Source: Oculina patagonica
Taxonomy: Eukaryota
Reading direction: 5' to 3'
NCBI RefSeq assembly: GCF_052425735.1
Contig: NC_135763.1
Location: 38,130,001-38,194,000 of the forward strand
Length of the DNA stretch: 64,000 bases
Each line of letters opens with the position of its first letter. Position 1 is the first letter of the stretch. The notes below the pieces were generated by a model that was not told the DNA's origin, ran no database searches, and saw only the letters and a list, made by a program, of their open reading frames with translations. Shown piece after piece: positions 325-35,200 of this stretch. Both the position numbers and the translations under genes were made by a program.

Positions 325-936
325 CTATATTTCACTGATATCCATTGTTTGCAACCTAGGCCTGTCTGGAAAATTAACATCCGCAATCATTTCACAGCTC
401 ATTTCACTTGAACTGTTGCTGGTAGAATATTGATAGTGGTGCGAGCTGTCTGGCTCGAAAGATGGGTTAACGAATTGATGATGTAATTGCATTTGCTCTT
501 AGCTGAAACCGGCTAACACCTGAAAGGTGCTCACTGTAGCAGGAGCCGAGGATACCAGCTCTTCACCAGGCCTGTTGTTTGGCGGACTGTCCTGGCCAGC
601 CTGAGGCCTTGATTCTGGTCTTGTCCAGGAGCATATGCCAGGAGCCGAGGGTACCGGCCCTTCACCAAGCCTGTTGTGTGGCGGACTGGCCTCGCCTGGT
701 CTTGGTTTTGGTCTTGTCCAGGAGCACGTGCCAGTTATTGGTTTGGCTGGTGGTATTGTAGACTCTTCTTTGCGAATGCTAATCAAACTGACTGGGTTGT
801 TACGGCTACTTGGCCTTTCCAACTCTACAATGTCTTTTCTTTGCTGCACGACGTACATCACTAGGATAATGACCACGATTATTAGAATAGTGACAAGCGC
901 CAAATTTAGGCAAATTAAACTTTCTACTGTCTCCAT
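325..936 (-). pseudogene. TM-adaptor-like paralog 1; near-identical to paralog 2 but with a premature stop (145 aa instead of 203 aa)
   Basis: Almost identical to 5173..5784. CAA (Gln) is TAA at 499-501, and the frame continues to the ancestral TAG at 325-327. Splice acceptor (tttag) at 968-970. Could be a truncated functional allele rather than a dead copy. Confidence 0.75.
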
Positions 937-5172: not shown

Positions 5173-5784
5173 CTATATTTCACTGATATCCATTGTTTGC
5201 AACCTAGGCCTGTCTGGAAAATTAACATCCGCAATCATTTCACAGCTCATTTCACTTGAACTGTTGCTCGTAGAATATTGATAGTGGTGCAAGCTGTCTG
5301 GCTCGAAAGATGGGTTAACGAATTGATGATGTAATTGCATTTGCTCTTGGCTGAAACCGGCTAACACCTGGAGGGTGCTCACTGTGGCAGGAGCCGAGGA
5401 TACCAGCTCTTCACCAGGCCTGTTGTTTGGCGGACTGTCCTGGCCAGCCTGAGGCCTTGATTCTGGTCTTGTCCAGGAGCATATGCCAGGAGCCGAGGGT
5501 ACCGGCCCTTCACCAAGCCTGTTGTGTGGCGGACTGGCCTCGCCTGGTCTTGGTTTTGGTCTTGTCCAGGAGCACGTGCCAGTTATTGGTTTGGCTGGTG
5601 GTATTGTAGACTCTTCTTTGCGAATGCTAATCAAACTGACTGGGTTGTTACGGCTACTTGGCCTTTCCAACTCTACAATGTCTTTTCTTAGCTGCACGAC
5701 GTACATCACTAGGATAATGACCACGATTATTAGAATAGTGACAAGCGCCAAATTTAGGCAAATTAAACTTTCTACCGTCTCCAT
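5173..5784 (-). CDS. TM-adaptor-like paralog 2: single-pass type III membrane protein, 203 aa, Pro-rich tail
   Basis: N-terminal hydrophobic run LICLNLALVTILIIVVIILVMYVV followed by RK. Two ~33-aa internal repeats (CSWTRP...SAP), an FVNPSF motif and C-terminus ISEI. Pyrimidine tract plus AG acceptor at 5816-5818; candidate upstream exon with donor at 6615. Confidence 0.85.
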   Translation of the reverse strand: METVESLICLNLALVTILIIVVIILVMYVVQLRKDIVELERPSSRNNPVSLISIRKEESTIPPAKPITGTCSWTRPKPRPGEASPPHNRLGEGPVPSAPGICSWTRPESRPQAGQDSPPNNRPGEELVSSAPATVSTLQVLAGFSQEQMQLHHQFVNPSFEPDSLHHYQYSTSNSSSEMSCEMIADVNFPDRPRLQTMDISEI

Positions 5785-8700
5785 TGTTATGGATTGAAGG
5801 TTTCTTCTGTAGAAGCTAAAGAAGAGAGAAGAGAAAAGAGAGGTTATAATTATCAGTAATTACCTCAGTATCAGGAGTCTGGATCGAGCGGTCAAAGTCC
5901 GGGTTCTAGGGTCATTGCGTTGTTTTTTGTTTTTTTTGTTTGTTTGTTTACTCTCACAATGCCTCTTTCCACCCAGGTGTATAAATGAGTACTGACAAAT
6001 TTAATTTTATCTTGCAAACCACTAGCACCTCATCAAGGGGGAGTAAAAATACTCGTAGCCGATTAATGCTGGTGAAACCTTGATAAGCTCCGGTCTGATG
6101 GGCCATTTGCCTCGCACGAGAATTTAACTTAATTTTCACTGCGGCAAGGAAATTCGCCGAGGTGTTATCTAGAGGTCTGGGTCAAGGGGTAGGAGCTTGG
6201 TAAACAAAATGTTTGTGTAATAACGTTCAGCAAATACTTTTTACTTAGAAAAAGTGTGTTCACCAACTTTTGCTCGAATTTGCCGACAGAAGTTCAATTT
6301 TCCAAAAGTTGCCCAGTCTATTGTGTGCGGAAATAACGGGTAAAAATAAACAGATAAAACAAATTAAAGCAGCTATTCCGCGCCTCGTTAAACAAAATCC
6401 ATTTACATTTGTGCTGAGTTCGACCCGGAAATGTTTTGATTTTTGCCATAAATGATCAGTTGCCGAGCCATTTCTCGTGCAAAATCCTGCACAGATTACC
6501 CAAGTCTAAACATTGAGAAAAAATTCAGCTTCTAGTTTTACAGTGCAGTAGTTTGTTATTATTTGCGCGTTACCACTTTTGATCTACAGCTGAATACCCA
6601 AAATTGAATTCCTACCTTAAAGATCTAGATATATTCACAGTTGGTGTAAAGAAGTGTTCTGTATAAAGGGATCCAACAACCTTTTTTACAATGCCCAACA
6701 TGCTTCCATTAGGACGACAGTAAGTTCGCAACACACAGTGAAAAACATGACGACAGCTCCAAACACCGGCGGAAACTAATACATGTCACGTGACATGCAA
6801 AACAGTTCGAGGTCGCTTTTTTGTGTCAAAGTTAATTATCTCCTCTTGTCATAATCCTCTGTTGAGGGTGTTGAGTTTTAAGAGAGGCATCCACTGTAGA
6901 CTCATCTGATTTTAAAGCCCGGCCAGATGGGGGGATACCAAATTTTTTCTTGATATACCTCATTTCTCTCCCCTAAGATACCAAAAAAGCAAAAACATTG
7001 ATAACAAATACCTAAAAATTATTGTAATACAGAACTGACAGAAAACCCTATACAGTAGAACCCCGATTTTACAATCGTCGATTAAACGATATCACGATTT
7101 GACGATACGATTTTTATGTCCCCTTGCCATATCGTAAAATCGGGTTCCACTGTACCTGAATTTTTTTGGCAAAAGCATACCGAATACCTTGGTAAAATGC
7201 ACCCAAGATACCGTAGGGTTCATAGGATAAGTGACGAAATAGAGAGCTGTAATACTTTGTATTTCAGGAGACGGAATTAGACGGAATTCCCCTGTCAGCG
7301 AACTGACAGGGGAATCTGCCAAAATGCTCTGGGCTGATAGTCTCCTTTGCTCATATTCAATCCAACAATGAAGGGAGTAGCTTGGACTTTTATGTGTTTT
7401 GTAGTCGCTTCTTGAGTTAAAACAACAGGTGTTAAGGGTTCACGTAGTAAAGCAGCTCTTGTAAGCTTGTAATTCTGCAAATCCTCTACTGTAGCAGTTG
7501 TTATTGTTTTGGGGACTAAAAAGGGAACTGTTCCTGTTGTATGCCGTGTTGCAACAATGATTGAAATTGTCCACAGACGTACGTTTCTCTGATCTCTCGA
7601 CGAACTTTAGAGAAAATAGGGGGTTGGGAAATTAAAGCCTATGATTGAGACAGCACTGGCTAATTAAAGATCTGATTCATGGTCATCATGGCCATATTTG
7701 GTATAATTATTCCACATCCCGCTCCCGGCCGGCCGCGGCGAAATGAGTGCGGAATCAGACACCAAACACGAAAGCAACCCGGCATTGTTATTAAAAGGGA
7801 TAATTTTAGGCATTAATTAGTTGTTAACATCATTTTGTCTCGTGGCAATCTTGTGATCAAAGGGTGCCCAGCAGTCAAGAGTAAGCCGAGACGTATGTCA
7901 TCCGTTAGTCCATAGTTAAGTCTCGATTAAGTCCTTTAACATAATTTTAACAATGGCTCTCATGCTGTTTACGATTTAGAGTTAATATGCCTGTCCATAG
8001 AGAAAAGTTTTGTCCTTTCACAAGCCGTCAAGCGACCCAGTGCGATCACGAATAGCTTTTTTTGCTTTCGGTCTGATCTGATCTGGACCGGTTACGAACC
8101 GACTGTTTGGACTATCTTACAGTGGAACAAAATTCAATCCGGTTTCGGAATGGGTAACATGAACCAGACAAAGTTCCTGTTTCGTAAACACTGAGACATG
8201 TCAATCAATCTTTACATTCCCGATCTGTGTGATAGTGTGGAACGAGAGTTTTTCCGGATCTTGTCCACTGAGCTAGCTAACGCGATAAGCTCACAAGCCA
8301 GATGAAATCCAAAACTGTATCACTCGGGTGAAAGCCATCAGTGACAACCGCATGACTGGAGGAAAAATGTTCAGTTGCTAACTTTTTTGTGCGTTTATTC
8401 TTAACATAACCAGATAAAATTACGTATAATTTTTAAGCATAATCAATTTCCAGTAGAAAAATATTTATGATACAATTCTAATACTGATTAGAGCGCATAT
8501 TGCTAGATTGTTAAAATCATCAACAGACTGACAAAAAATTATTTTCTGACAATATTTTACAGTAGACTATATCTGAGTGTTTATCTGGTACAACAGACTT
8601 AAAACGCACATGATTTAGAGAATATTAAACTGTTTGACTTACTCGCCCTCGTTTTGTTTGAGCGAAGAGAAAATATTAAAATTTAATGTACTGTATTTTA

Positions 8701-9117: not shown

Positions 9118-9765
9118 CTACGCTATATCAGTAATATCCATTGTCTGTAATCTGGACCTTTCTGGGTTATTAAGAAACGCAAGTTCGCCCCTGTTCTGGT
9201 ACAGCGGTTCTTCTGTTGGATTGTTTTCGTATATTGGTTGTTCCTCCTCCTCATATGCCTCGTTGCTGTATATAGGTTGAGGATCACCTCTGATTTCACT
9301 TGAACTGTTGCTGGTAGAATCTCGATGATCTTGCGAACTGTCTGGATCGAAAGATCGGTTAACAAATTGATGTAACTCTATTTGCTCTTGGCTGGTACCA
9401 GCTACCTGAGAGGTGTTCACTGTAGCAGGGGCCGAGGGTGCCTCTTCGCCAGGTCTGGTGAGATAAGTGACAGTCTCTTCCGGGTCTTGGCGTACAGCAG
9501 ATCGCCTGTTTGCTGGCTTGGCTTGGCCAGGTTCTATGGTGTATCGCATTGCTGAGGAGCTTTCTCGCTTCCTTTTGTACTCGTCTTTAGTTTTCGTGTC
9601 TTGCCTGTTATCATTGGGATCAGTGTAGACAAGGTCTCCATTTCTTGTGAGCTTATTTAAGTCTCGACGAATTCGCCTCACTGTGACACAGAGATATATT
9701 ATGACAATGCAGAGGAGAACACAACAAGCGCACGCCGCCACTGTGAGGATTAATGACAAAGCCAT
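9118..9765 (-). CDS. TM-adaptor-like paralog 3: 215 aa, Cys-rich TM segment, three YxN motifs
   Basis: TM LILTVAACACCVLLCIVIIYLCVTV then RRIRR. Tail is homologous to paralog 2 (SAPATV, QFVNxSF, STSNSSSE, RLQTMDI) with added PIYSN, PIYEN, PLYQN. Acceptor ttttccttttcag 3 nt before the ATG. Confidence 0.88.
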   Translation of the reverse strand: MALSLILTVAACACCVLLCIVIIYLCVTVRRIRRDLNKLTRNGDLVYTDPNDNRQDTKTKDEYKRKRESSSAMRYTIEPGQAKPANRRSAVRQDPEETVTYLTRPGEEAPSAPATVNTSQVAGTSQEQIELHQFVNRSFDPDSSQDHRDSTSNSSSEIRGDPQPIYSNEAYEEEEQPIYENNPTEEPLYQNRGELAFLNNPERSRLQTMDITDIA

Positions 9766-17388: not shown

Positions 17389-19344
17389 CTAAACATCAAT
17401 TATGTCATTACTATAGATCGCAAATTCGTTTTGACTTTCAAGTGCGGGATTGCCATTGCACGTAGCTGTTCCATGTCGAACGTTTATGTTGGCATATATA
17501 GGACAATTGTCAGAATATTCATCGCCAACGTTTTGAGCATTCTCCTGGTTGGCGTAAAACGCTTCTGGCTGCGCAGTAGCAGGTATTTCGCAGTATAAAT
17601 CATCATTGTCGCCATCAACGTTAGCGTAAATCTGCTCGGTGTTTTGATGTCCTTTGTCTACTACATCTCTTGTATTGGCGTGGTACTCCTCAACAGCGCA
17701 CTTTCCTTGAACTTTGTTTTCCTGTACAGCTGTTTCAAATCCAGCAGCGGATTTGTTGTCGCTGTCAGCATACTGTGCCGAGTCGCCTGTCCTCTTCTGA
17801 AGGAGGCTTCGGAGTTGTAAAACAATGCTAGAGGGCCTTTCTGTCACCTCTTGGGTAGTAGCATAGTCATACATGTACTGGTCTTGCTTCCCATCGCTTG
17901 GTTTCATTTTACCATTGCCTTCTAAAACACGTTCAACTTGATAATCAGGGGTCCTTGGAACGTTGGTGCGCGCTATATTAGCAAGCTGGTCCACTTGGTT
18001 GACAACTTCGTACTCGCTGTCATTTTGATCTTCATTCTTTGAGACTCCATTACTCTTCAAGTGTTCCCCTGAGCGTTCCTGAGTTTGCGTAAAGTCAGGA
18101 CCACCGTTAGGTCTGTTCTTCTCCAGCTGTTCTACGTGCTTGGTGATTACGTATCCATTTTTATCTACAGCTACATTATCCAGGGACGACATGCGTTCTT
18201 CGGTCTTCTTCGTCTCGTCGGCTTGTGTCCAACCAGTGCTTCTCTTCTTCTTGGTTCGTCGTTTCGCTTTTGGTCGCATTTCATTAGGGGTAACTTTTCC
18301 AGTCTCGTCGCCATTACGAGTTATCCCTTTCTCGGGGCCCTCTGATAAGATGGGTGATTCTTCAAAATTGAAAACCGCAGCAAAGTCACGTTCATTCTTA
18401 TTCGGTAGCATTTCACCATCCACGATTCCACTATTTGCAATAGCTTTGTTTTTCTCCGCTTCTTGGGACTCTTGTTTATTATTTCGTTGCTCGTCACTCT
18501 GGCTTTTCATCAAATTAGGTTGCCCTTTGTAGAAGGCAGCTTTTTGTTCCCTGTTCCCCTCAATCAAAACTACGCATTCAGGTTTGCCCGCGTCTGATCC
18601 CTTTTCAGCTTCTGAGATGTCTTTCTCCTTTGAACGGATTTGCACTGTATTTGTTTTATTTTTGCTGGAGATGTTTTCATTCTCGTCAGGACCCAAATCA
18701 CCCTTGTCATCTAAAGGCATCGTTTCAAGCTCCGTTTGGGTGGCATCTTCAAGGCGTTCCGTGTTGTTATCAACATCACCATCGGCACTGCTTACACTAA
18801 TGTAAATTCTTCTCTGGTCATGTTTTGTATCCTTTACAGGGCGATCACTCGAAGAGATTGCCACAATCGTTGAGTTACTATCAACTATTTGCAGGTATGA
18901 TGTGACTGGGACATCGGGAACGGGAGTTGGTTCTTCTTGCGTCTTTGCATCATCAACTGATGCTTTACCCTCTACTGGCGACATGGAAGCAGTTTCTTCC
19001 GAACTCGGGTGAGGTGCGACTACATCCGAACGGACTGATGCATAAGCAAAAGCTCTATGCATGTGTTTCCAGGAATTCACAATGTCTGAATCTGCAGCTT
19101 GCTGATTGTAAAATACCAAAGGAAGTGGCGAGGAAGGGCTTTCCACTTCTGGTTGATTTTCTTTGGTCACTGGTGTTTCTTCGCAGGAGACCAATCTGCA
19201 ATAAACGCTCCGTCTCTTGGATATGCTGTCTACTCGATGATGGATTTTTCCAAGCCAGAAAATGAGAAACAAAACGATTATCCATAGCAGTGATGACAAA
19301 CAAAGAAGAACCAGGGCAATTTTAGAGACAAAACCTTCATCCAT
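17389..19344 (-). CDS. TM-adaptor-like paralog 5: 651 aa, long acidic disordered tail with many Tyr motifs
   Basis: Uninterrupted 1956-nt ORF. TM IALVLLCLSSLLWIIVLFLIFWL. Motifs TSYLQI, SEYEVV, YDY, QIYAN, FYAN, PIYAN, AIYSN. Acceptor at 19379-19381. Confidence 0.92.
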   Translation of the reverse strand: MDEGFVSKIALVLLCLSSLLWIIVLFLIFWLGKIHHRVDSISKRRSVYCRLVSCEETPVTKENQPEVESPSSPLPLVFYNQQAADSDIVNSWKHMHRAFAYASVRSDVVAPHPSSEETASMSPVEGKASVDDAKTQEEPTPVPDVPVTSYLQIVDSNSTIVAISSSDRPVKDTKHDQRRIYISVSSADGDVDNNTERLEDATQTELETMPLDDKGDLGPDENENISSKNKTNTVQIRSKEKDISEAEKGSDAGKPECVVLIEGNREQKAAFYKGQPNLMKSQSDEQRNNKQESQEAEKNKAIANSGIVDGEMLPNKNERDFAAVFNFEESPILSEGPEKGITRNGDETGKVTPNEMRPKAKRRTKKKRSTGWTQADETKKTEERMSSLDNVAVDKNGYVITKHVEQLEKNRPNGGPDFTQTQERSGEHLKSNGVSKNEDQNDSEYEVVNQVDQLANIARTNVPRTPDYQVERVLEGNGKMKPSDGKQDQYMYDYATTQEVTERPSSIVLQLRSLLQKRTGDSAQYADSDNKSAAGFETAVQENKVQGKCAVEEYHANTRDVVDKGHQNTEQIYANVDGDNDDLYCEIPATAQPEAFYANQENAQNVGDEYSDNCPIYANINVRHGTATCNGNPALESQNEFAIYSNDIIDV

Positions 19345-22300
19345 CGAGATTCCAGGAGCCCTTTCCAGAAACGTGAGGCTAAAGACACAAAAAATATTGG
19401 TTAGAAGACCAAACGAGATCGATCTTTACTAGCGCGTGTTGCGCTACTTTATACTTATTTTGAGCCAATACACGAACCATAAACTATAACGTGGACTCAT
19501 GTTGGCAAGTGAGAATTTCCCATCCTTATAATCAATGGGAAATTGGTATAACCAGCAAAAGGAAAGTTCAGTGTCACGATATTTTCTCGCGTCAGAAGGC
19601 GTGACTCTTCTGTTGAAAACTGCAGGCTGAAACGATTTCCGAACAAAAAGGTGTTTTATGTTCTCTTCCGCATGTCCAAGAACCCAAGCCTCCTATGCTG
19701 GCTTTCTTTGGTCTCGTCGAGCCTAACGAGAGTCTGCATTGAAGGCCATAGAACAGTGTCTTTATTTTTGCACTTGTACATTGTTGAAATTTTTTGCCTG
19801 ACCCCAGTTCTTGCACTACATCGAAAGAAAATGCTATTATAATTTATCACTTCCAGCTTTTTAGCCGTCCTAGTCACCTGCCTAGTTTCTCCGTTATTTT
19901 TTGGTTTTTATTATTCATATAAAAGTATCTTTTCTTCGTCATTAGTCAAGAATGTAATAAGTGTCTTTTCTGTGCTATTCTTCTCACCGCATACAGACTT
20001 AAAGACTTTGAATGTTTGACCCCAACTGATTAGAAGAGCCTTAGCCTTGCGTGTATTCTTCCGCCAGCATAAATACGGGATTTGCATGGTCTTGACGAAA
20101 AGGTTAAGCGTTTTAAAAGCATTCTTCTGACAGATATTTGTTGGAGTAAAGTTGCACAAACCACGCAATAGAAACGCGAAAGGACGAGGAATAGAAATTC
20201 GTTTAACAGACATCTTTATCAGTTACATCATCAAACAAAAATGTAAAATCATAGGCCCAAGTACTGAGGAAGTCCTGTGAACCGGCTTTAGGATAGGATT
20301 TCACTATTTCGGGAAATTACTTGAAATAAATTAAACTTCAATGTAGTAAAGTTGACACACAACTCCAAAAGGTTTACAAATAGTCTTACTGCACTGTTAC
20401 AATTTCTTAATACATCAAAATGGAAGGCCCAAATTGTTCAAGGGAAGAATAACACTAACGGATGAATAACACTATCCAGTCGATAGTGCATATGTTTTCG
20501 TAAACACAGCTTATCCAATGGATAGCGATTTATCCAGTGGATGGTATTATGCACCCTTTGAGGAACCGGAGCCACATGGATTAATTATCAAGAAATGCGC
20601 CAGGACAGGCATTGCACCCATTGTGTGTACAGATCATTTTTTAACACTTTTGAAGTGAACATGGGCCACCAAATCGTCATTTCTCTAGAACGGTACTGTC
20701 ATTGTTATACAGTAAAATCCCGATTTCTCGAAGTTGTATTTTCACATTTCCCGATATCTCTAAGCGAATTTTTTTTATTTGGGAGTTTGGACCAAGCGAA
20801 CAAGCAACTCTACCCGACCAGGACCCCACTTAACGGACTTCCCATTTATCGAAAAACTTTTCGTTTCCTTTAAATGTTCGAGAGATTGAAATACCACTGC
20901 ATTTCTCGGCAAATGATTGTGATATGACAATAGCAAATCTAAGCTGTCGGATTTGTTATTTATCAGCAGGATGAATCAACAGACAAATCAAGTTACGTTT
21001 CGTCCACAGGCCTGTACTGATGTGTGAGTATGGAAGCGAGAAGTACACAGTGTGCTGACAGTAGCTTGAGATGCCTACCTTTTCCACTTGCTTTAATGAA
21101 TGAATGAATATAACGTGAATATAACGCCGTATCAACCAAATCGTGTCCTCGTTGCTCTGCTAAATAGTATGGAAGGTTAAAAATAAGGGATTAAAATTTA
21201 CTGCGTAATTGGAACACGGAACTTTAAGCTTGCGGTTCACAGGGTCAACTGGCATTGCATAACAGTAGCCAGTTGCATTGTGTAATCAATATTGCGGGAT
21301 TCTTACTAAGACATTGCTTACATATTTGGTACAAAATCAACTAAGATAACCATGTAACGTACGGTTGTAACAACAGATGCTGTCGCCTGCAGTCCACCAG
21401 TAAAGCGAGTGGTGGAGTGGTGGGCTGCTGGCGAGCACTCAGATTCTGGTAAACCTGGATTCCAGATATTCAATTTAAGGGAAACGACGAAGAAAGTAAT
21501 GGGACCGATTACGCCTTTCAATGCTTAAAAACAAGGAAGGGGAAAACGTTTTGCTCTTTCGAGCGGCCTAGTTGCACTTTTTCAACAAATAGATCCGTAA
21601 TTGCATGGTAGTATTCCATATTGGCTAGTCTTAAATGACCTTGCATGTGCGCCTGGCATGTAAGATGCAACCCCGGCCCTTTGGAGAAGAAACCGCGTTT
21701 TTCTCGTGGCTGAGCTGTTTCTGCTTGTAGTTTGACGTTTTTGTGTAAAGTGGGTATTTTTTCTTCCATTTTATGGATGCATGGAGAAACGTGTTCTCGT
21801 CCCGGTTCTTGTCTGTTAAATTGACAATAGTTGCTAAACAAACAAGTTGGATAGCTGCGTATCTGGGTTAGTTGAAGCCATAAAATATCTCTTATTTTAT
21901 TAACTGATCTCAAATTTTAATTACAATTCTGAGGTTAACTTTAATTTTATTTAACTAAATATATATTATATATACAAATCTGTGATCAATGTTTATAGTT
22001 CATGTAAGATATAGTTTTTTTATTATTTTATTGGATCTTTCTTGGCTTAAAGTCCTTTGCAGAATCTTAAGCTTCAGATGTATATATGATTGTTCGTACA
22101 TTCCTTTATATTCTTGGCAGTTTCCCACAGTTATTTTTCCAGTACATACAATATTTGTCATGCCGGTTTCGAAATTTGTGGCGGTATAAGTACTAACAAA
22201 ATGGCCATGTTGCATGTTGTCTTCTTAAGTTAGGTGGCTTTAAAAATCGCTTACACTTTCATGAATGTAAAATTCTGAACGCATTAAAACTCGTTTTGGA

Positions 22301-22667
22301 TACTCGGGCAAAACGAAACTTTTTTATATATATTTATATGTTCGACCTATATATGAAGTGTTCAAGACGCGAATATTAAAATATACCAGGTGAGTGCCTC
22401 TTGTTCAATTGGACGATGACCAATTTTGACCTTTTCAAACGCTCAGTTGCCAGCTATATTGGCAATTTATATACAACTTTAGAGTCCATTATTTACAAAC
22501 GGGTTTATGAAAGATCAGTGCTTCTCGCCTTAGATCATCTAAGGCGAGAAGCATGATATTATGTACTGGCAGCATATGATTCTTGACGGCTAAAATTATT
22601 AAAAAATCTTTTGGAAAACCAACTGTTTTTGGCTAAATTGGAATGCTTTTAGACCCTTTTAACTGCA

Positions 22668-24323
22668 CTAAACATTCATCATATTGTTGTTGTCGTAAAT
22701 CGGACTTTCGCTGTAAACGAAAGGATTGTCGTTACACATAGAAGATTCCTGTTGAACTTCTCTATTGGCATAAATTGGGACATCATCGGGATAATCAACA
22801 CTGGCACCAACATTTGCGACAATCTCCTGGTTGACATAAATCACTTCTGATTGAGTCTCAGCGTTGTCATTACTATTGTTGTCATTGATATTAGCGTAAA
22901 TCTGGTCAGTGGTGTTTTTCCTCTCTGTTGTTAACTGGGAATCCTTGCTGTCAGTGTCTTTCGCCTCATTCGCTCTTTCGTGGATTACAGTGAGATTGTC
23001 ATGGCAACCTTCAGTGGAGGACTCGGCGCCAGGCTCAGCTCTACCAGTGACGTAGTTTGTCTGCAGCTTAGCAGCATCACTAACAGGTGATCTGGACCAG
23101 TCTTTCACCTCTCGGGCTGTGATGTAGTCGTAGCTGTTTTCATCTTCATAACTTGGATCAACTGGCCCACCGCTTTCTGAATTACCTCCAGCCTGGGACC
23201 TGTACACTGGAGTATCGTTGTTAGCAGCTGCGTCTTCCACGTGTTGTACAATGAGATATCCATAGCCATCTTCATCGGCACTCTTTGAGATTCCATTACG
23301 TTTCATCTTTTCACCAGGATGAGTTTGTTGGAAATCAGAAACAACGTGCGCGTTATGTCCAAACGTTGTTAATGTGCCAACTTGCTGACTAGAAAGGTAG
23401 CCGTATTTGTCTTCTTCTAGATTATCCAGGGGTGATACATGGCCATCTTTATTGTATACACCATCTGCCTTGACCCTTCCATCGGAGTGCGTCTCAGCTC
23501 TCTTCTCCTCGTTGTGAAGCCGTTTCTCTTCCGACTCAGTTTTAATGGGAATAAGGTATAAGGACTCGTCTTCATGAGGAGGAATCTCATTCTCAGTTGA
23601 TATGTCAGAATGGATAACCACGAGGTATCCGTGGTCATCTTTATTTGTCCTGTCTTTTTGCCCCTCTTGGGAAGACTTTTCTCTTTGGCGCCTGTCACCC
23701 TTCATTTCAGTCACATCTCCGTCAACAGAGGACTCTCCTTGACAAAACTGCACTTGTGATGAGTCAACACAGGGTTGTGCGTAGGTGTTATCTTTGGCGC
23801 TCTTTAAACTCATGTACGTCTTCCTCAGTTTGCCATTTGTGACATGTCTTTCAGGGTGATCACAAGAGGACTGTTGTGTTGTTGAGCTGTCATCGACGTT
23901 TTGAAGGTATGCTGCATCCTCTATGTCACTGGATGTTGTTTTCTCTTGTGTTTTTGAGCCATGATCTGATTTTCCATCCTCTCCTTGTGCCACAGAACTG
24001 ACAAATGAGGTTTCTTGTAAATCTGAACGCGGTTCATCTCCATCGAAACCCAGCGGTCCATACGCAGCAGCACCAGTAAAATGATTCCAGGAATTTATTT
24101 TGTTTAAATCTGAAGGCGCTTCCTTGTTGGAGATGACCAGAGGGAGTGAGCAGGTGTTCTTGGATACGTTATCAACTCGATGTTTTATTTTTCTCAGCCA
24201 AAAAATGAGAAACAAAATCAACAGCAATAAGGAAGAAAAGAAACATAAAAGAACCACTGAGGCTTGGAAGACAAAATCTTCATCAATGGAAATTCCAAAA
24301 GGGTTCTCCACACAGGACTTCAT
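22668..24323 (-). CDS. TM-adaptor-like paralog 6: 551 aa, paralog of 17389..19344
   Basis: Start MKSC lies 1 nt after the acceptor ctttag (24325-24327); the ORF-track extension to 24428 is intronic. TM VVLLCFFSSLLLLILFLIFWL. Collinear Tyr motifs QIYAN, VIYVN, PIYAN, PIYDN and YDY. Confidence 0.92.
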   Translation of the reverse strand: MKSCVENPFGISIDEDFVFQASVVLLCFFSSLLLLILFLIFWLRKIKHRVDNVSKNTCSLPLVISNKEAPSDLNKINSWNHFTGAAAYGPLGFDGDEPRSDLQETSFVSSVAQGEDGKSDHGSKTQEKTTSSDIEDAAYLQNVDDSSTTQQSSCDHPERHVTNGKLRKTYMSLKSAKDNTYAQPCVDSSQVQFCQGESSVDGDVTEMKGDRRQREKSSQEGQKDRTNKDDHGYLVVIHSDISTENEIPPHEDESLYLIPIKTESEEKRLHNEEKRAETHSDGRVKADGVYNKDGHVSPLDNLEEDKYGYLSSQQVGTLTTFGHNAHVVSDFQQTHPGEKMKRNGISKSADEDGYGYLIVQHVEDAAANNDTPVYRSQAGGNSESGGPVDPSYEDENSYDYITAREVKDWSRSPVSDAAKLQTNYVTGRAEPGAESSTEGCHDNLTVIHERANEAKDTDSKDSQLTTERKNTTDQIYANINDNNSNDNAETQSEVIYVNQEIVANVGASVDYPDDVPIYANREVQQESSMCNDNPFVYSESPIYDNNNMMNV

Positions 24324-27300
24324 TCTAAAGAAAGAAAAAGCAGAAAGTTTGTTAGAAAGATCACGTCTGGACAAAGCCGACCCGTAACAACCATTGATAA
24401 GTAAGTGGATCAATACTTTCATGCCCACGCTATGATAAGAAGGTTTAGTTTTAACCCATTGTAAATTTTAACAGCGTTAAATTTGAACCCTTTATCCTGT
24501 TGAATTAAAGTACTCTGGGTTTTAGCAATCTTAGCCTATTACCAAACTATTTATCGAATAAAGCATGATCATGATCATGATCATGAAATTTGCAGCCCCC
24601 TTTTTACCCCATTTTTACCATTTCCCAATCTCGTAAATGCTACTTTTATTTCTTTCCTGCCATCAAGGGTGCATGAGTACTTTAATGGATGGATTTAACG
24701 TGAAAACGTGTAATACCTCTCATACGTATTACGCATTTAGCAATGAGGAAAAATAAGGCGCAGACGTCAGGTATTTTACTCCTGCCAAAAAAATAAGGTA
24801 ATTTTCTACCATACATTGACCCCAACATGTTAATGCGATTTGAAATGACTCCAAAACGTAATGTATCTTTTTAATCCAGCTTGCAGTCTAGATTGTACTG
24901 ACAGGATATCTGCGGGCTCCACGTCTCGCTGACAGTACATAACATACATACTTAAAACTTTATTTAAACTCGAATGAAACAGTACGACAGTACGATTAAA
25001 ACGAAGGTGAGGACAGAAAATACCAATGACCAATTTGCTCTCACATGAGCTACGGTCCCGAGCTAGCTTGGTCAATACAAGATTTATTACACGACTAATG
25101 TTTTGTATTCCAATTAAACCATTCTTTGGGAAAATTTCAAAAAATGAGCATTACGTTGCTGTTAATTAAAATATGAATTTAAACTACTTACTTGCACGTA
25201 CTGCTTAGAAATAATTTAAAACAATTACCTGTCACGCCTTTTTTACATTGAAAAGCTTGCACAGATGAACAGTTTGCAGCATACGTTACTAATGGAAAGA
25301 TTGCCGACAATTTATCGAAAGAGGAAAGTTTTGAATTTTGGTATGCGAGAAACCAAACAAGTGCAGTGATGATAGTTGTCATTTTAAAACCAATCAGCAG
25401 TCAGGCTGGGAACACGATAACCAAGACATGCTGATAGGGCTAAAAACTGAAATCAGCCAATCATAGTGTTTTATTCCTGATCCAATATTTTGTTAAGTAC
25501 CATATTTCGAATCTATTCTTAAAACATATCGAGTAAGGTATTTTCCCGTGCAAATGGATCGCTCTATTATATCAGCAGATTATATTAATCAGAGACAGGT
25601 TTGAGAAGCATTAATATGACTCGCCTGAGTTATATTGCTGTGTTCGATTGTGTGTTTTAATTGGTCACTGCAGTCTGCCGAGACAGTACTTCTTATTTAG
25701 ACATTTCCATGAATGTTGTGAAGTTCGATCTTAAGCTGCGAGGTGTTTGAACACGTATCATTTACTCCTTTGACCAACGAGCGTTTGCAAAATTTTTGCT
25801 CTCATCGTAAACCTAGTATTTTACTGATTTTGATTTCTTTTCATAGCAACGCATCCTCCGGATGTTCATGTTTAGTAAGGAGATGATCTGACCGCCAAAG
25901 TGGAACCGCCGTTACTAGAAAACATTACGGAAATTCTATGGGGATCAGCAGTGAGAATTTAATTTAATTGCGGAGTGGAGCTATTGAATTTTAACTCAAA
26001 TTTATCATCGGTTTCATGGCAGAAGAACTGACAAGTGTTAAGTCAAATTACGCTTACCAAATCCGACATAAGATTTAAAAAATAAGAAGCCCTTTTCGAA
26101 GAAACACAGGAAGTTTGTATAAACAAGTAGCTTCCTCGGCACGGGCGATACCTGTGTAGACGTAAGCTCTCTTATCAAATACATCATCGTCAAAATATGT
26201 GATAACCATTGCCCCACAGCTGGGCGCTGGTCTGACTTCAGTACATTGGGTCAATAGAATTTCCGTACGCGGAAAAATTCACTAAAACGAAACATATTGT
26301 GCCAAAGTACAACTATAAAACCAAATTTAACCGTCTTTCTAAATAAGAAAATGTTTTTTTGTAAACAATTACGCTTATAGTTACATCAACGTCTGCAACG
26401 TTGCCGTTTATGTAATCGTATGGAAATCGTAGGAAGTATAAATTGATAAACATATACAAATAGAGAGCTAAGCCCACATTTTAAGTCACGTTTTTGAGCG
26501 TTCGACAGAGGATTGTCAGGGTAGATAGCTTAGATGATCTAACAAGATTTGAGCGGAACGTACAAGGCGGCATTCCAAACAAAGGACAATTTAAGCTTGT
26601 ACCCCAATAATCCCGAATCTCAAAGTTGTTGTCTTATTGTGTCATATCGTTGCTACCGTCATCTAACGGGTTATTTTTCTGTGCTTTGTGATGTTTATGC
26701 AAGATAAAATGTGTCGACAGTTGTTTCATGTACCAACCTGTATTCAGTCTAAAGGCAGATATTTAGTGGATTCGTCTCCGCCTGTAAAACCGAACTCACG
26801 GTCCTTCCTGTGCCTGTTAATCCTCGCAACATTTAATACTGATTTGTTATTGTCGGCGCGAGAGGGAATTTATACAGGTTCATAAGGTCGACGCAGTACA
26901 CGTCATAATTAATTTGGGTCAAATCTTATGACTGCAGGCGCTGGCTAGCAGAACTCAGAGTGACTGATGGGAAACTCGATCTGAAGATGTTTCAGTAAGA
27001 GGCAATTGGAGTTCCACGTTAACATCATACCACATTTATTATGCATAAGATTTTACACAGTGAAGCTCCAGACTGAGTACTTCACTGAAGAGTATTTGGT
27101 CTTTGGCTTAAAGAATAGGAATAGAAATTTTATTGAACACTCCTAAAATAGGTTTTTTTTAGTAATCAGTACAATACATAAAGAAATGATAAAATTTCTA
27201 TATATAAATTTTATATATAAAATATATTTTATAAATAAATAGAAATAACGGAGAAATAAGAAAAAAATAAAATATTTGTATACTACCCTTGTTTTAAAAA

Positions 27301-29299: not shown

Positions 29300-32200
29300 A
29301 TGGCGGCTCCAAACTACAGATACAGACTTAAGAAAAACCATGGAAAGATTCTGCGAGATATTGAGCCGAGAAAAATCGTAAACATTCTGTACCAGGATGA
29401 TGTTTTCGATTTGGAGGACATGGACGACGTTAGGTCCGAGAAATCGAGGAAAAGACAAGCCGAGGTGCTCCTTGACAAAGTAACTCGTTCAGGAGATGGA
29501 GGTATTGCTATATTTGTAAACGCTTTATGGCAAACTCAGAGACATTTGTACCAGCTGCTACAAGAAAAAATACAGGGAGAAGAAATACAGGCGCAAATAG
29601 ACGCACAAGTGCAAGCAAGTTCAGGTTTGTGCCCAGTATTTTTGTAATTGACCTATGAAACTCGATAATAATTATGTTGGAAAGCGGCGTCTATTTTGAT
29701 CAAAGGCGATTTGGCTTATTTAGCAACTTTTAGGGAGCGCACAGGCTACTTCCCAGCATGCATTAGGTTGTGATTCCTTCCAGGGGGAGTAATCACAACC
29801 TAGGTGTATTGGAGTTCACTTTAATGGCCTTTATGCATCAGTCAATTGAAACCCTGGCCCCCCGACCCCCGGGACTTACCGGGAAATTTAACATTTGCCA
29901 AGCGTTAAAACCCGGCTCATTACCCCGCCCTAGGGGCCAAGACATCTGTTAAAAGCCCCGCATAGCGGGGACATCCTAACCAAATAAAGCAACAACTCAA
30001 GAGCGATATTCTGGAAAAACCGGTGAAAATCTTGATTTCGTTCCAGAAGTTAAAATCCTGTTTCTTTCATTTATTGTCCAGCTATAAGGTGGGAAAGAAA
30101 CCTGATGTAGTTTGTTTCCGCCAAAAGCCTTTTACATTGAGAAAACTAAGAAATCATTTTTCGTAGTCAGAGTCACAATTGCCAAATTTCTAACCCGAAA
30201 TAAGCTATTATGAACACACCTGTCGGAAGACCCATAATATCGGGGTGTGATTGCCCTACAGAACGTATTTCAGCTTTTGTTGACCATCTACTTCAGCCGA
30301 TAGCACAGAAACAAGCTTCATGTGACAGACTTTTATAACCTCATTGAGAAGATTACACTGCCCAAACAGTCTAAAAAAGCCTTCCTTGTCTCAAACCTAC
30401 AGAGCTGTTCCAATACACCGATTGCTATTCGTGTCATCTGCTAGGCGTCACGAATGGCTTTATCATGGGAGAAGCGTTAAGACATCTTAGAACAAATTCC
30501 TCACAATGTACATTTGAGGAAAACATTGGTCCTTCATGTTAAATCCCGGCTGTCGTCCCCGCTTCAGGTGATTGCGTGCTGTTAAATCACAACTCCACGG
30601 CCCCGATCTACTGACATTTTGTTAAATCTACCGCCCACAGGGGCCAACGCGCCGTTAAAAGTGCGTTAAATCCCGGCTTTGGACGCGTTAAATCCCCGGT
30701 AAGTCCTGGGGGTCGGGGGGCCGGGGTTTCCATTGACTAATGCATTAGGAAATGAGCTTAATAAACACCAGGGCTGCAAATAATTTTTTTTTCACTTGAA
30801 AGGACATTTGTCTTACTAAGACACCATCTTGGTCCGCCAAAATAAAATTGTGGTCGGACATCACCAAATACAAAAGGGTGAATTTTATTCATCGTTGCCG
30901 TAAAATGATTTACAATCAAAAAGTTGTCCGGACATCATGTCCGACCACACTTGGGATTTTGTCGGACATGAGCATATTTTGATCAGCCAATGTCCGATGA
31001 TCGACTGTTATTTGCAGCCCTGAACATGCACTGTACATATCTTTATTTGTTCAAGCATATTCACTTTTATACATGTAAATTATGTTCATCTGACTTCAGT
31101 GATTTGTAAAAAATAGTAATCCTAATTCACGTTTTGTTTTTGTAGGTTCAGGAAATATGGGAATTGCAAACATCACAAATCAGATGGCTGTCACACACGT
31201 ACATGAAGAACATCCCACTTACATAAACAAAGGTATTTCTATATATAGGCTCTTTTGATCGTACATACAAATCTTAAGTGTCTAGATCTTAAGGGAGATA
31301 AAATAGGTACATGGTGAACAGAAAGGTGCCTGTAATGATATTCGGTGACTACTTAAAAGATGAGACGGATTCAACAAGGATTACTAAACACAACTTTACT
31401 CGTACAGTAATCCAAGATGGAGGCAAACTGTCTGACATGCGCAGAGACCATGCGGTCCATAAGTAGCTAGGGAACTGGTGACTAGCCATATCATGACATC
31501 CCCCTTATAATACAAAATAAAATAACAAATATAATAAAACTGTTCAGCAATGTTCGGTAAACAAGATGCCTTGAATATTGTCCGTTTAGAACAGTGTTCA
31601 GACCATTGGCAATGCAAAGTCACTTGTGAAACTTAAACTATACTATATCTGAAAACAGGAACACGAAACTAGTTGAATAAATGTTACTCGGCAAAACGAG
31701 CGGGTCTGGTCACTGTGCGTCCACTCCTGGTCCGGACAGGCTCAGGACCCTGATTGGCATTGGGAAGGGTGGTCTCCATGGAGACCTGTGTCGGATTCAC
31801 AGAAGCAGCAGTAGCACCACTTAGCAGACTGGGCATAGGGGCAGACTGTAATGCTTCTGTAGATTCAGGAACACTTGGGTGAGCTTCTGAAACTGTGTTC
31901 TCATCTGTGGGGCCCATCTCGATGTGTTGTGCACCGGCGGGGCGAAGGTGGCACCTGTTGCGTCGTAGGGTTGAGCCATTCTGTGTCTGTACCTCATAAG
32001 AGCGGGGTTCTGGTCTCTTGCAACTTACGGTTCCTGGAAACCATTTCTTGGTGCGTTGGTCCTGTATGCGTACATGTTGTCCAGTTGCCAGGGGACTTAG
32101 ATCATGCGCATTCCTATCATGGTAATATTTCATGCTTTGTTGTCGTTCTGTTAGCCTCTGGGAAATCTGGTCTCTATTAGGCATTTGATTCTCTATTCTG

Positions 32201-35200
32201 ATGGGAAGATTTGATTTGAGCTTTCGCTGATACAGCAGTTCAGCTGGAGATGGAAGCTGTGAATCAATAGGAGTAGATCTTAGACAGAGCATTGCCATAG
32301 TGAGGTCTTTACCAGATTTCTCAGCCTTGTTGAGAGTGTTTTTAACAGTCTGAACTTGGCGTTCAATAAACCCGTTAGACTTTGGGTATCTTGGGCTGGA
32401 AGTTATGTGCTGAAAACCCCAATCCTTGGAGAACTGCTTGTAACTTTGACAGTCATATTGTGGACCATTGTCCGAGATAATGACCTCGGGTACTCCTTGT
32501 TCCGACAGTACGCACTTGGTGAGACCAACGACAGTTTCTCCTGTGGACTGTCCACTTGGGATTTTCCTGACGATGGGGAATTTAGAGTAATAATCACATA
32601 TTAGCAGATATTCATCTCCTTTCCAGAAGAATAGATCAGTTCCAATGACCTGCCAAGGCCTTGTGGGTACTTCATGGGGCTCCAATGTTTCCTTGGCTTG
32701 TGTATTGTGACTTTCTTGACATATTTCACATCTCTGGACTCTGGACTCAATGTCCTTGTTAATAGTTGGCCAAAACACACAAGACTTAGCTCGCAGCCTG
32801 CATTTCTCGAAACCTTGGTGAGCCTGATGAATTCTCTCTATGACATCACTCCTTTGTGACTCTGGGATAACGACTCTTTCCCCTTTTAAGATTAGACCAT
32901 TTTCAACAGAAAGTTCATCTCGGTAAGCCCAATACTTTCTCAAGTGCACTGGAACCTGTTTCTGCTTGTCTGGCCAGCCAGAGTAGATGATTTCTCTCAG
33001 GCCTGATAGTTCAGGATCTGCAGAGGTGTCTTGTTTAAGGGAGTCGAACCTCGTGTCAGTGAACTGGACGAGACACACCTTGTGTAGGTCTAATGTGCCT
33101 TCACTGGGTAGGGGATTTAGCCTTGACAAAGGATCAGCCAGATGCATTTCTGTGCCTGGTTTGTACTTGATTGCCATGTCGTACCCTTGCAATCTGAGCA
33201 GCATTTTTTGAAGCCTTGGAGGGGCAGCTGTTAAATTCTTCAAGTGGATCATTTCGAGGGGCTTATGATCAGACTCCACAATGAACTTCTTTCCAAACAC
33301 ATAAGAATGAAACTTCTCACAAGCCACAATAACTGCAAGCATCTCACGCTCGATATTTGCATACCGTTTCTCAGTGTCAGTAAGTGCTCTAGATGCAAAG
33401 GCGACAACCTTGCCATCTTGTATGAGGGCACTTCCAAGGCCCCGCAGGGATGCGTCAACCTGGATGACTGTTTCCTTTTTAGGATCAAAGTACGTAAGCG
33501 ATACTTCCTGACAAATTGCTTCCTTGATGTTTTCAAAAGCTGTACTGTGAGACGAGGACCATTGGAAATCAGTGTCCTTCTTGAGTAGGTTTCTCAAAGG
33601 CTCTGACATTGCAGACAAATTTGGAATGAAGGGGGCCATGTAAGTTGCTATGCCAAGGAAGGTTTGGAGTTCCTGGGCATCCTGTGGCTCCTGAATGGCC
33701 TTGACGGCCTCAATTTTCTTGGGATCCGGGTGAACCCCTTCTGCATCGAACAACATTCCGAAGAATGTAATCTTTGGCTGCTTGATACTGCATTTGTCCA
33801 GGTTGAAGACCAGACCATGTTGCCTTGCTACTAGCATTAGATTATGCAAATTGGCATCATGTTCCTCTGTGGTAGGGCCATGCACTGCGATGTCATCGGC
33901 AATACCGACAGTTCCCGGGCATTTCTCAAGAATAAAATCCATTTTCTGTTGAAAGATATCTTGACTCACACACAATCCAAAGGGAAGGCAAGTAAATCGG
34001 AATCTGCCGAACGGACTGTTGAAGGTTGTAAGGAAGGAAGACTCTTCATCTAGTACTACAGACCAGTAACCATGATGGGCATCCAACTTTGAGAATACTG
34101 AGCTGCCCTTGAACTTGTGTGTGATTTCTTCTAGAGTTGGGGTATGGTGATGACTTCTCTTCACAGCCTGGTTGAGATCTTTGGGATCTAAACACACCCT
34201 CCATCTCCCATTTGACTTTTGGGAGTATGCAACACTTGAAACCCAGTCGGTGGGTTCAGTCACTGGTTTAATCACACCAAGACCAATCATTTCATCAAGT
34301 TCCTTTCTTATGTCGTCCTTGATGTGAATGGGACACTTCCTTGGTGCATGTACCACAGGGGCATCAGGGTCAACGACAATGTGATACTCTCCTTCAAATT
34401 TGCCAATACCATTAAAACGATCTGGATAGAGCTTCTGGAGGTCATCTATGCTGTGAATTGCAGGAACTTGGCAGTGCACACCGTCATTGCTTGTGTTTAT
34501 CTCGCAGTGTAACTCCACTAACTTGAGTTTTCATGAAGTGGGCAGGCCACAAATAGCAGGGCCATCAACATCAGCAACATAAAACTTGGCCTCAGTTTCA
34601 CTGGAATCATATGAACATTGGATAGAACACACACCATGCTGGGGTATTGATGTACCATTGTATGCAGTCAGCTTCGTTTGGCTCGGTGTTGTGTCTTTCG
34701 GAAGGCCATTTTCGTCCAGGCAATCTGGGAACATTTTTCCATAGATTCTTAATGGCAGAATGTTTCCTTGTGCTCCAGTATCCACCTTCACTTTCAGCAG
34801 AGCATTTGGATTGCCAAGTTTCGGCAGTTTTACTTTAACATGTGCATAAGCTTCATCTCTCTCCACATCAGCACCAGTGCTATCAATTTTGATGCTCTCG
34901 AATAGCAACTGCTCGAAGTTAGAACTTGTTTCTTCTACCATATGTACCTTGCTCTGCTTTGCTTTGTCATATTTCTTTCGGCCATCAAATTGCGGTGGTC
35001 TGGTTTGTCGGCCCTGTGTCTGCTTATTTCTGCTGCACACTTGCTCCCAATGATTGTACTGCTTACATTTCCGACATCTTGTACCATATGCTGGGCATTT
35101 TTTTCCATGGTTGAGTCCACATTTCCCACATTGTGGGTTGGAATCTTCTCTGACAGCATCAATATTTGTTTCATCAGTACCAGCAGAGGCACCTTGCAGC

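Follow-up and report, generated by a model that had tools for sequence, protein, structure and literature searches.

LAT, NTAL, PAG and LAX organise immune and growth-factor signalling in vertebrates, and transmembrane adaptor proteins (TRAPs) of this kind are, to our knowledge, generally treated as vertebrate-specific. No cnidarian or other invertebrate TRAP is described in the full-text literature that we searched. LAT has a very short ectodomain, one transmembrane (TM) helix and a domain-less tail, in which a proximal YLVV is followed by several distal YxN motifs (PMC3342071). NTAL and LAX were discovered by way of YxN, the motif that binds Grb2, and PLC-gamma1 docks on LAT at YLVV; a CxxC palmitoylation motif occurs in LAT, NTAL and PAG and is absent from LAX, so it is not universal (PMC3342071). 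PAG1 (Cbp) is a scaffold that recruits Csk (PMC3492796; PMC3342071). Here we analysed a stretch of 64,000 nucleotides from the coral Oculina patagonica (NCBI RefSeq assembly GCF_052425735.1, contig NC_135763.1, positions 38,130,001 to 38,194,000 of the forward strand), referred to below as the window. It contains six minus-strand open reading frames (ORFs) with an N-terminal hydrophobic helix, and the last two of these, paralog 5 (P5) and paralog 6 (P6), are the subject of this report. Judging from their sequences, we consider it fairly probable that P5 and P6 are TRAP-like phosphotyrosine scaffolds, similar to LAT and PAG in architecture and not in sequence.

P6 is like LAT in its very short ectodomain, single TM helix and domain-less tail, and in carrying an exact YLVV with four YxN motifs distal to it; in both proteins the YLVV is preceded by Gly. 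The two differ in that there is no sequence homology between them (no Pfam hit), P5 and P6 have no juxtamembrane CxxC, and the coral tail is more than twice as long. It also has extra conserved motifs (ESxYLIP, YDYI, AAY and K-x-Y-M-S-L-K), and in P5 the tyrosine of YLVV is missing. LAT, for its part, is a protein of vertebrate immune cells. NTAL/LAT2, LAX, GAPT and SCIMP share the architecture with clustered YxN motifs of the Grb2 type, and LAX likewise does without CxxC (PMC3342071); all four are unrelated to P5 and P6 in sequence, much shorter (~150-400 aa) and restricted to vertebrates. PAG1 combines an ectodomain of 16-20 residues and a TM helix with a long tail of ~400 aa, which has 9-10 tyrosines, some of them in Src-SH2-type motifs. 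It differs from the coral proteins, which have no TM-adjacent palmitoylation cysteines, no sequence similarity to PAG1 and no proline-rich SH3 sites that we noted. The C-terminus of PAG is a PDZ-type ligand, a possible parallel to the C-terminus of the P5 clade, where DIIDV is a possible PDZ-type ligand as well.

Both coral proteins are predicted to span the membrane once in type III orientation, with hardly any ectodomain and a long, disordered cytoplasmic tail. Only 8 residues in P5 and 20 in P6 precede the TM helix (a 23-residue hydrophobic helix in P5), with no signal peptide or ligand-binding domain, and the tails comprise 500-620 residues. In the AlphaFold2 (AF2) model of P6, built on an alignment of 41 sequences, the helix at residues 15-56 alone is confident (pLDDT 89-98), and everything after it is modelled at pLDDT < 50 with no secondary structure. 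An hmmscan search returned no Pfam-A family for either protein at E <= 1. A short ectodomain, which in the P6 clade includes a conserved Cys4, might instead mark P5 and P6 as signalling subunits of multi-chain receptors, comparable to DAP10, DAP12, FcR-gamma and CD3-zeta; they would then associate with a separate ligand-binding chain, via the membrane or the short ectodomain, and would not be free-standing raft adaptors. The TM and juxtamembrane region is the best-conserved long stretch in the P6 orthologs (0.55 vs 0.47 for the tail), and corals commonly carry surface-receptor genes in tandem arrays. However, the TM helix contains no charged residue, by means of which DAP12- and CD3-type chains usually pair. 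The proteins also have no immunoreceptor tyrosine-based activation motif (ITAM), their tails are 10-20 times longer than such subunits, and no partner was identified. We regard this explanation as quite unlikely.

P5 and P6 are adjacent, expressed two-exon genes with a non-coding first exon. Contigs from four public runs were placed on positions 19001-25000 of the window. X1, X2 and X6 cover discrete blocks (exons) only and thus behave as RNA, while X12 covers every bin and thus behaves as DNA; the RNA runs come from other individuals, which differ in the P6 5' untranslated region (UTR). The RNA-type contigs of P6 extend over 21868-24326 and then run into sequence that does not adjoin them in the genome. 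With 1 mismatch, a 17-mer from this loose end matches 26740-26756, where the minus strand reads ...GACTGAATACAG and continues with a GT donor; the 30-nt loose end of the P6 mRNA has no match in the window at <= 2 mismatches. A 1-nt insertion polymorphism at 19375/19376, present in X12 too, accounts for 4 unplaced letters at the P5 splice joint. In both spliced mRNAs, the first ATG (19344 in P5, 24323 in P6) has an in-frame stop only a few codons before it. The P6 orthologs begin at the same Met, with MK[T/S]CE..FGISID, and a complete transcript contig of a relative has the same TM-first ORF. The gene limits and start codons that a previous reading of the window, made from the sequence only, had assumed are exact. 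Coding upstream exons, which could have supplied an ectodomain, were considered and rejected, as the RNA contigs show that the upstream exons are untranslated. An all-against-all BLASTP of the minus-strand stop-to-stop frames of positions 1-29300 found no exon common to the upstream regions of P5 and P6.

Three further observations concern these gene models. Cys4 of P6 (window 24312-24314) is conserved in P6-type ectodomains (MK[T/S]C) and missing from P5-type ones; it could dimerise the protein through a disulfide, as happens in several signalling chains of vertebrates. Window 20510-20561, a short segment of the P5 intron, is a high-copy dispersed repeat: summed over contigs, its depth in the DNA-type run is ~10,300, while its surroundings reach ~100, and each of the three RNA-type runs contains it as well, with many different loose ends. 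Over window 19019-19431, which covers the P5 N-terminus and 5' UTR, there are 17 differences between X12 and the window in ~410 nt, compared with 1 position for the X2 contig and 0-5 per 500-800 nt for the P6 contigs. A divergent haplotype at the P5 5' end is one possible explanation, and a contig from a related species is another.

An exhaustive HMMER scan of 1.84 billion representatives recovered 22 relatives, and a set of 5.8 billion added 29 P6-type and 13 P5-type proteins with 40-99% identity. The detected relatives come from coral data only. The sole named one is 'uncharacterized protein LOC110063674 [Orbicella faveolata]', and two others are from a Tara metagenome of a coral sample. A profile search with the 41-sequence alignment returned only known P6-type proteins; it was word-limited and has no bearing on sea anemones or other cnidarians. 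The maximum-likelihood tree contains four well-supported clades, namely the P5 clade, the P6 clade and two more, with no supported order among clades B, C and D. In two assemblies (L007 and L008) a P5-type gene lies 3.4-4 kb downstream of a P6-type gene, and in two others (L012 and L013) a third-clade gene is followed by a fourth-clade gene in the same pair arrangement. Gene order and motif content suggest that in the latter the clade C gene corresponds to P6 and the clade B gene to P5, though strict orthology is not claimed. The pair is thus syntenic in four other assemblies, and the P5/P6 duplication is therefore old within corals.

The tyrosines of the tails are preferentially conserved. 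BLASTP aligns P5 with P6 in two collinear high-scoring segment pairs, with 29% identity over 373 aa (6e-21) and 37% over 192 aa (1e-14). The sequence-only reading had paired ten tyrosine motifs of the two proteins, and all ten pairs are real, collinear and mutually aligned in the family alignment. Tyr is the most conserved residue type between P5 and P6, being identical at 12/20 and 12/22 positions as against 25% and 31% of all tail residues (permutation p = 0.0007 and 0.014). Among 21 family members, identity at the reference Tyr is 0.44-0.46 vs 0.27-0.29 (z 3.2-4.2), and the conservation profile around Tyr peaks at -2, -1, 0 and +2. Conservation near Tyr also exceeds the background in ortholog alignments. 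In 25 P6 orthologs it amounts to 0.66 vs 0.47 for Tyr itself (p = 0.004) and 0.57 vs 0.46 for the non-Tyr flanks within 3 residues (p = 0.002), and in 15 P5 orthologs to 0.53 vs 0.44 for the flanks (p = 0.004). The nearly invariant columns of the 41 sequences are W42, Y88, E253, S254, P259, Y398, Y518, N520, Y543 and N545; except for W42 in the membrane, all of them are Tyr or lie at most 3 residues from one.

The same preference is seen at the codon level. We calculated the ratio of nonsynonymous to synonymous substitution rates (dN/dS) by NG86 from the coding DNA of four orthologs per paralog, with islands defined as every Tyr +-3 residues regardless of conservation. The Tyr islands have a dN/dS of 0.14-0.43, compared with 0.56-0.81 for the rest of the tail and 0.46-0.62 for whole tails (0.58-0.59 in P5). 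The island/rest ratio of dN is 0.33-0.87, with permutation p <= 0.037 in 7/8 comparisons, which share a reference and are therefore not independent. Together, the conservation peaks at Tyr, -2, -1 and +2, the lower dN/dS and the predicted disorder support the earlier proposal of selection on short linear motifs in a fast-evolving tail.

The tyrosine pattern could be an artefact of alignment or composition in two neutrally drifting low-complexity ORFs, given that alignment programs favour Tyr-Tyr matches, that D, E, S and N abound in the tails and that their overall dN/dS is high. This explanation is largely refuted, and we give it hardly any weight: both genes yield spliced transcripts, dN/dS stays below 1 everywhere and is lower still at islands chosen blind to conservation, and the same motifs are found again in the 41 sequences, across four clades and five syntenic assemblies. 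Moreover, the other high-scoring residues C, H and F are among the least conserved.

The sequence-only reading had gone further, describing the tails as conserved mainly at their tyrosines and highly diverged elsewhere. Preferential conservation near Tyr holds, but 71% of the P5/P6 identities lie outside the islands: these comprise 21% of the tail and contain 46 of 156 identities. Only 42% (P6) and 33% (P5) of the positions conserved at >= 0.8 are near a Tyr, and seven to nine Tyr per protein are not conserved. Conserved islands without Tyr include juxtamembrane HRVDxxSK, LPLVxxN, NSW, TQE and FQQT and, in P5, PECVVLIE, a basic Lys/Arg cluster and SSIVLQLR.

The conserved sites fall into a limited set of motifs, whose positions are collected in Table 1. 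Motif logos were derived from the 41 sequences, and residues are numbered as in P6 unless P5 is stated. In the proximal half of the tail, the consensus is K-[K/R]-x-Y170-[M/I]-S-[L/V]-K at the Y170 site (with His at Y170 in 9/16 of the P5 clade), [D/E]-D-x-x-Y233-L-V-V-I-H at the YLVV site and E-D-E-S-x-Y256-L-I-P. At the last two the P5 lineage has lost the tyrosine, showing Cys (PECVVLIE) in place of Y233 and Gln, Lys or Asp in place of Y256. Further conserved sites are K-Y-G-Y309-L, D-x-G-Y356-L-[I/L]-V-Q-H and H-x-Y443-L-T-V-V-H, the last of which has Asn in P6 itself. Where Y398 is present, +1 is D or E in 36/37 sequences and +3 is I or V in 31/37. The P5 clade has a YLQI of its own at P5 Y150, which is lineage-specific and invariant among the P5-type sequences (n=16; +2 Q in 15/16).

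Both tails end in a cassette with four YxN sites, against 1.6 expected. Its consensus is [D/E]-Q-I-Y476-[S/A]-x-[I/V], E-V-x-Y496-V-N-Q, D-x-P-[V/I]-Y518-A-N and E-S-P-[I/L]-Y543-D-N, and Asn at +2 is found in 31/32 sequences at Y496, 39/40 at Y518 and 37/37 at Y543, but in only 13/33 at Y476. The cassette tyrosines of P5 (Y573, Y584, Y597, Y617 and Y644) are kept in 13-15 of 16 sequences. Most proteins of the P6 clade terminate directly after YDNP. ITAM, NPxY and YxxM were absent from the P5 and P6 tails in a motif scan.

In the published classification of SH2 specificities, class IA (pY-hydrophilic-hydrophilic-hydrophobic, where pY is phosphotyrosine) comprises the Src family, Abl, Syk and Nck, class IC (pY-x-N) comprises GRB2, GADS, CSK and others, and class IIA (pY-hydrophobic-x-hydrophobic) comprises PLC-gamma, SHP-1/2, VAV and p85 (PMC9783222 Table 2). 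By these classes, all of them defined in vertebrates, Y[D/E]YI would belong to class IA, the three or four C-terminal YxN sites to class IC, and YLVV, YLIP, YL[I/L]V, YLTV and the YLQI of P5 to class IIA. That Y-[A/S]-x-[I/V] at Y476/P5 Y573 is a Csk-type site is a motif-level guess.

Tail tyrosines might, on the other hand, act mainly unphosphorylated, as YxxPhi sorting signals for clathrin adaptors or as structural aromatic 'stickers', and the proteins would then be trafficking cargo or regulators of trafficking. YxxPhi motifs are indeed enriched, with 8 per tail vs ~3.8 expected (P ~0.02), the Y170/Y181 site accepts Phe and His, and acidic clusters adjoin several motifs. However, the best-conserved YxN sites have a non-hydrophobic +3 residue (YVNQ, YAN[N/S/R], YDN[P/N]), unlike YxxPhi, and most of the conserved sites have I, V or L at -1 and acidic residues upstream, which fits substrates of tyrosine kinases. 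Nor is Phe the preferred substitute for a lost Tyr: at the 15 Tyr-majority tail columns it accounts for 10/71 replacements, not above the single-nucleotide neighbours N, C, H and S, a pattern that would fit a need for the hydroxyl rather than for the aromatic ring. A predominantly sorting or structural role thus appears unlikely to us.

The previous reading had proposed signalling hubs that mix activating and inhibitory docking, in effect of an immunoreceptor style, based on an immunoreceptor tyrosine-based switch motif (ITSM, TSYLQI), an immunoreceptor tyrosine-based inhibitory motif (ITIM, SEYEVV) and EPIYA-type Src sites. P5 does contain one TxYxxI, two [SIVL]xYxx[IVL] matches and EQIYA, and the genome contains SHP2 and Csk. 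Compared with shuffles of each tail, however, the counts are at chance: one ITSM match in P5 (0.14 expected, P = 0.13) and two ITIM matches (0.75 expected, P = 0.17), with none of either in P6. The defining -2 residues are not conserved either. At the ITSM site the P5-type sequences have Thr in 7/16 and Ala in 9/16, and the tyrosine of this site is present in only 5/25 P6 orthologs; at the ITIM site Ser is retained in 5/8 aligned orthologs. There is also no receptor ectodomain. Since ITIM and ITSM were the only basis for mixed activating and inhibitory docking, this part of the proposal is unsupported. Known cnidarian proteins with such motifs are the Hydractinia Alr proteins, which are membrane proteins with tyrosine signalling motifs in their cytoplasmic tails (PMC9546547). 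Unlike P5 and P6, which lack an ectodomain, an ITAM and a conserved ITIM, they combine large Ig-like (IgSF) ectodomains with ITAM/ITIM motifs.

EPIYA denotes the pentapeptide Glu-Pro-Ile-Tyr-Ala (PMC4946704, PMC3593179). P5 and P6 share with the EPIYA proteins CagA and Pragmin a disordered region in which tyrosines follow Ile and precede Ala (PIYA, QIYA), and PIYA and ESPIYD resemble the 'EPIYA-related' variants of bacterial effectors (PMC3593179). This looser set (e.g. ESIYE, EHIYD; PMC3593179) would admit EQIYA and ESPIYD. But neither tail has a strict match; the conserved pattern is [P/Q][I/V]Y-x-N, and the EPIYA label is unsupported because the invariant feature is Asn at +2 (39/40 and 37/37), the signature of Grb2-class pY-x-N sites. 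The suggested likeness of YDY to the Src-SH2 site of p130Cas holds at the motif level, as Y-D-Y-[I/V] resembles the YDYV of p130Cas and its +1 and +3 preferences are kept in the family. It does not extend to the Cas family as such, whose SH3 domain and YxxP substrate domain are absent from P5 and P6. Overall, we consider hubs of the immunoreceptor kind improbable. The broader idea of a signalling hub survives without the ITIM, ITSM and EPIYA labels, and a multi-site docking scaffold appears to be the best reading of the motifs.

Under the scaffold reading, a membrane-bound Src-family kinase would phosphorylate the tail tyrosines. The pY-[D/E]-Y-I motif would be a docking site of the Src class and could hold the kinase for further phosphorylation, and the three or four C-terminal pY-x-N sites would recruit Grb2-class SH2 adaptors, with Csk also included in the published class. 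In the P6 lineage, pYLVV, pYLIP and pYL[I/L]V would be sites of the PLC-gamma/SHP/Vav class. P5, which has lost several mid-tail tyrosines, retains the YxN cassette plus the lineage-specific YLQI and LYCEIP. Given these motif differences, the paralogs probably assemble different complexes. We infer from the motifs the tyrosine phosphorylation, which SH2 domain binds which site, the nucleation of complexes and the difference in output between P5 and P6.

Candidate partners are encoded in the genome assembly, which has at least 52 SH2 exon matches. PDB searches with single-exon translations identified a Src-family kinase (best hits HCK/SRC, 4.6e-40; C3:12.21 or 12.34 Mb), Csk (3.8e-15; C1:30.18 Mb) and SHP2 (5e-31; C6:24.36 Mb). 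Three Grb2-like loci, each with an SH2 half-exon and an SH3 exon 2-8 kb downstream on the same strand, lie within 130 kb (C12:27161535-27289108), which suggests a local expansion of Grb2/Gads-type adaptors in Oculina patagonica. In a language-model feature search, P6 was placed beside vaccinia A36 (OPG164) and the SCIMP, LIME1, PAG and GAPT clusters, those of SCIMP, GAPT and LIME1 being among its nearest named neighbours. Proximities of 0.82-0.90 with low counts of shared features make this a lead only, not evidence of kinship. The top neighbour, the TRAP-like A36 (0.90), resembles the coral proteins in its short ectodomain, its TM helix and its disordered tail, and its phosphotyrosines recruit Nck and Grb2 (PMC9333988). 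It is a viral protein of ~220 aa, and with a shared-feature count below the level of true relatives the likeness is one of class, not of ancestry. Of the features of TRAPs, multiple conserved SH2-type tyrosine motifs are present in the coral family, in the form of the 15 Tyr-majority tail columns across the 41 sequences.

Several observations weigh against the scaffold reading. P5 and P6 lack the juxtamembrane CxxC, their nearest cytoplasmic Cys (C57 in P6, C49 in P5) being 14-18 residues away, and hmmscan against Pfam-A at E <= 1 detects no homology to the LAT, LAT2, PAG, LIME1, SCIMP, GAPT or LAX families. In the 15 P5 orthologs the conservation of Tyr itself is not significant (0.53 vs 0.445, p = 0.12). 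Most conserved positions are away from Tyr, so the tails have other constraints too, among them acidic/Ser clusters, the basic cluster and the Tyr-free PECVVLIE. The tolerance of the Y170/Y181 site for Phe and His, the YxxPhi matches, which could equally be sorting signals, and the vertebrate definition of every SH2 class that we used count on the same side. So does the half-SH2 exon at C12:27267187, for which PTPN11 and GRB2 score alike in the PDB search; the presence of an SH3 exon 2.6 kb downstream speaks for a Grb2-like gene without settling the matter.

Homology of P5 and P6 to LAT or PAG is not supported, and convergence is more likely. We tentatively propose, as a possibility with somewhat less than even chances, that ectodomain-less LAT/PAG-like scaffolds evolved independently in stony corals as an ancient tandem pair, with one member carrying a PLC-gamma-type YLVV and a distal Grb2-type YxN cassette and the other mainly the YxN cassette. 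If this is true, TM adaptors that build signalosomes are not a vertebrate invention and arise convergently wherever Src/Csk/Grb2/PLC-gamma signalling needs a membrane platform. If confirmed, a coral-restricted family with the architecture and motif logic of TRAPs and synteny across deep coral lineages would provide a clean case of convergent short-linear-motif evolution. It would also provide a way into the assembly of phosphotyrosine signals at cnidarian membranes, with a bearing on immunity, symbiosis and allorecognition.

Table 1. Features of the P5 and P6 genes and proteins, with positions in the window (CDS, coding sequence).
Feature	Position	Strand	Basis or conservation
P5 exon 1 (5' UTR; 3' part only visible)	21079..21153	-	X2 RNA-type contig joined to exon 2
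P5 intron, GT..AG	19379-21078	-	splice joint 21079->19378
P5 CDS, 651 aa	17389..19344	-	ORF; entirely in exon 2; mRNA has in-frame TAA 5' of ATG 19344
P5 TM helix, residues 9-31, after 8-residue N-terminus	19252..19320	-	translation; aligns with AF2-modelled P6 helix
P5 SYLQIVD (Y150)	18880..18900	-	Y 16, +1 L 16, +2 Q 15, +3 I 16 of 16 P5-type sequences
P5 SEYEVV (Y445)	18001..18018	-	aligns with P6 GYLIV; Tyr kept in about half of relatives
P5 YDYA (Y492/Y494), counterpart of P6 YDYI	17860..17871	-	family Tyr 17/21 and 15/21
P5 C-terminal cassette QIYANV, LYCEIP, FYANQ, PIYANI, IYSN (four YxN)	17407..17640	-	
P5 C-terminus DIIDV	17392..17406	-	P5-clade conservation 0.7-0.8
P6 exon 1, 5' UTR	26738..26790	-	3' end 26738, then GT donor; 17-mer match
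P6 intron	24325-26737	-	GT..AG
P6 exon 2, including ~800-nt 3' UTR	21868..24324	-	RNA-type contigs X1, X2, X6
P6 CDS, 551 aa	22668..24323	-	ORF; entirely in exon 2; mRNA has in-frame TAG upstream
P6 TM helix, residues 21-43, after 20-residue N-terminus with conserved Cys4	24195..24263	-	AF2 and conservation
P6 AAY88, FAYA in P5	24060..24068	-	Tyr 38/41; consensus A-A-Y88-[G/A]
P6 RKTYMSLK (Y170), counterpart of P5 RRIYISV	23802..23825	-	Y 34/41, F 5
P6 TYAQP (Y181, YAxP), P6 lineage only	23772..23786	-	31/41; +3 Pro 22; 25/25 P6 orthologs
P6 YLVV (Y233), within DDHGYLVVIHSD	23616..23627	-	+1 L 28/30, +2 V 25/30, +3 V 28/30; 25/25 P6 orthologs
P6 ESLYLIP (Y256)	23547..23567	-	E, S and P near-invariant family-wide even without Tyr
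P6 GYLIVQHV (Y356), second copy of Y-L-x-V-x-H type	23238..23261	-	31/41
P6 YDYI (Y398/Y400)	23121..23132	-	37/41 and 36/41; N-x-Y398-[D/E]-Y400-I-T
P6 C-terminal cassette QIYANI, IYVNQ, PIYANR, PIYDN (four YxN)	22689..22910	-	

Three of the other paralogs in the window were also compared. Paralogs 1 and 2 (window 328-1011 and 5176-5859) share ~98% protein identity, and the match of paralog 1 to paralog 2 is split over two frames (502-1011, then 328-498), which corresponds to a frame break in paralog 1. Paralog 1 is either a very recent, decaying duplicate or one with a new C-terminus. Paralog 3 (window 9118-9765, minus strand) ends in the trio PIYSN, PIYEN and PLYQN (P-[I/L]-Y-x-N), of the type of the P5/P6 cassette, and shows no BLASTP similarity to P5 or P6 at 1e-3.

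Elsewhere in the window, positions 55720-55919 are a run of 200 N (an assembly gap or masked sequence). On the plus strand, a CARD exon (29300-29647; PF00619, 2e-16) and a caspase-domain exon (36204-37085; PF00656, 3.6e-52) lie 6.5 kb apart. Between them, on the minus strand at 31684-35745, is an apparently intact Ty3/gypsy-type element. Its 944-aa ORF encodes reverse transcriptase (RT), RNase H, integrase zinc-binding and integrase core domains, and the preceding 404-aa ORF, which has no Pfam hit, is gag-like by position. The retrotransposon thus looks as if it sits in an intron of a CARD-caspase gene.

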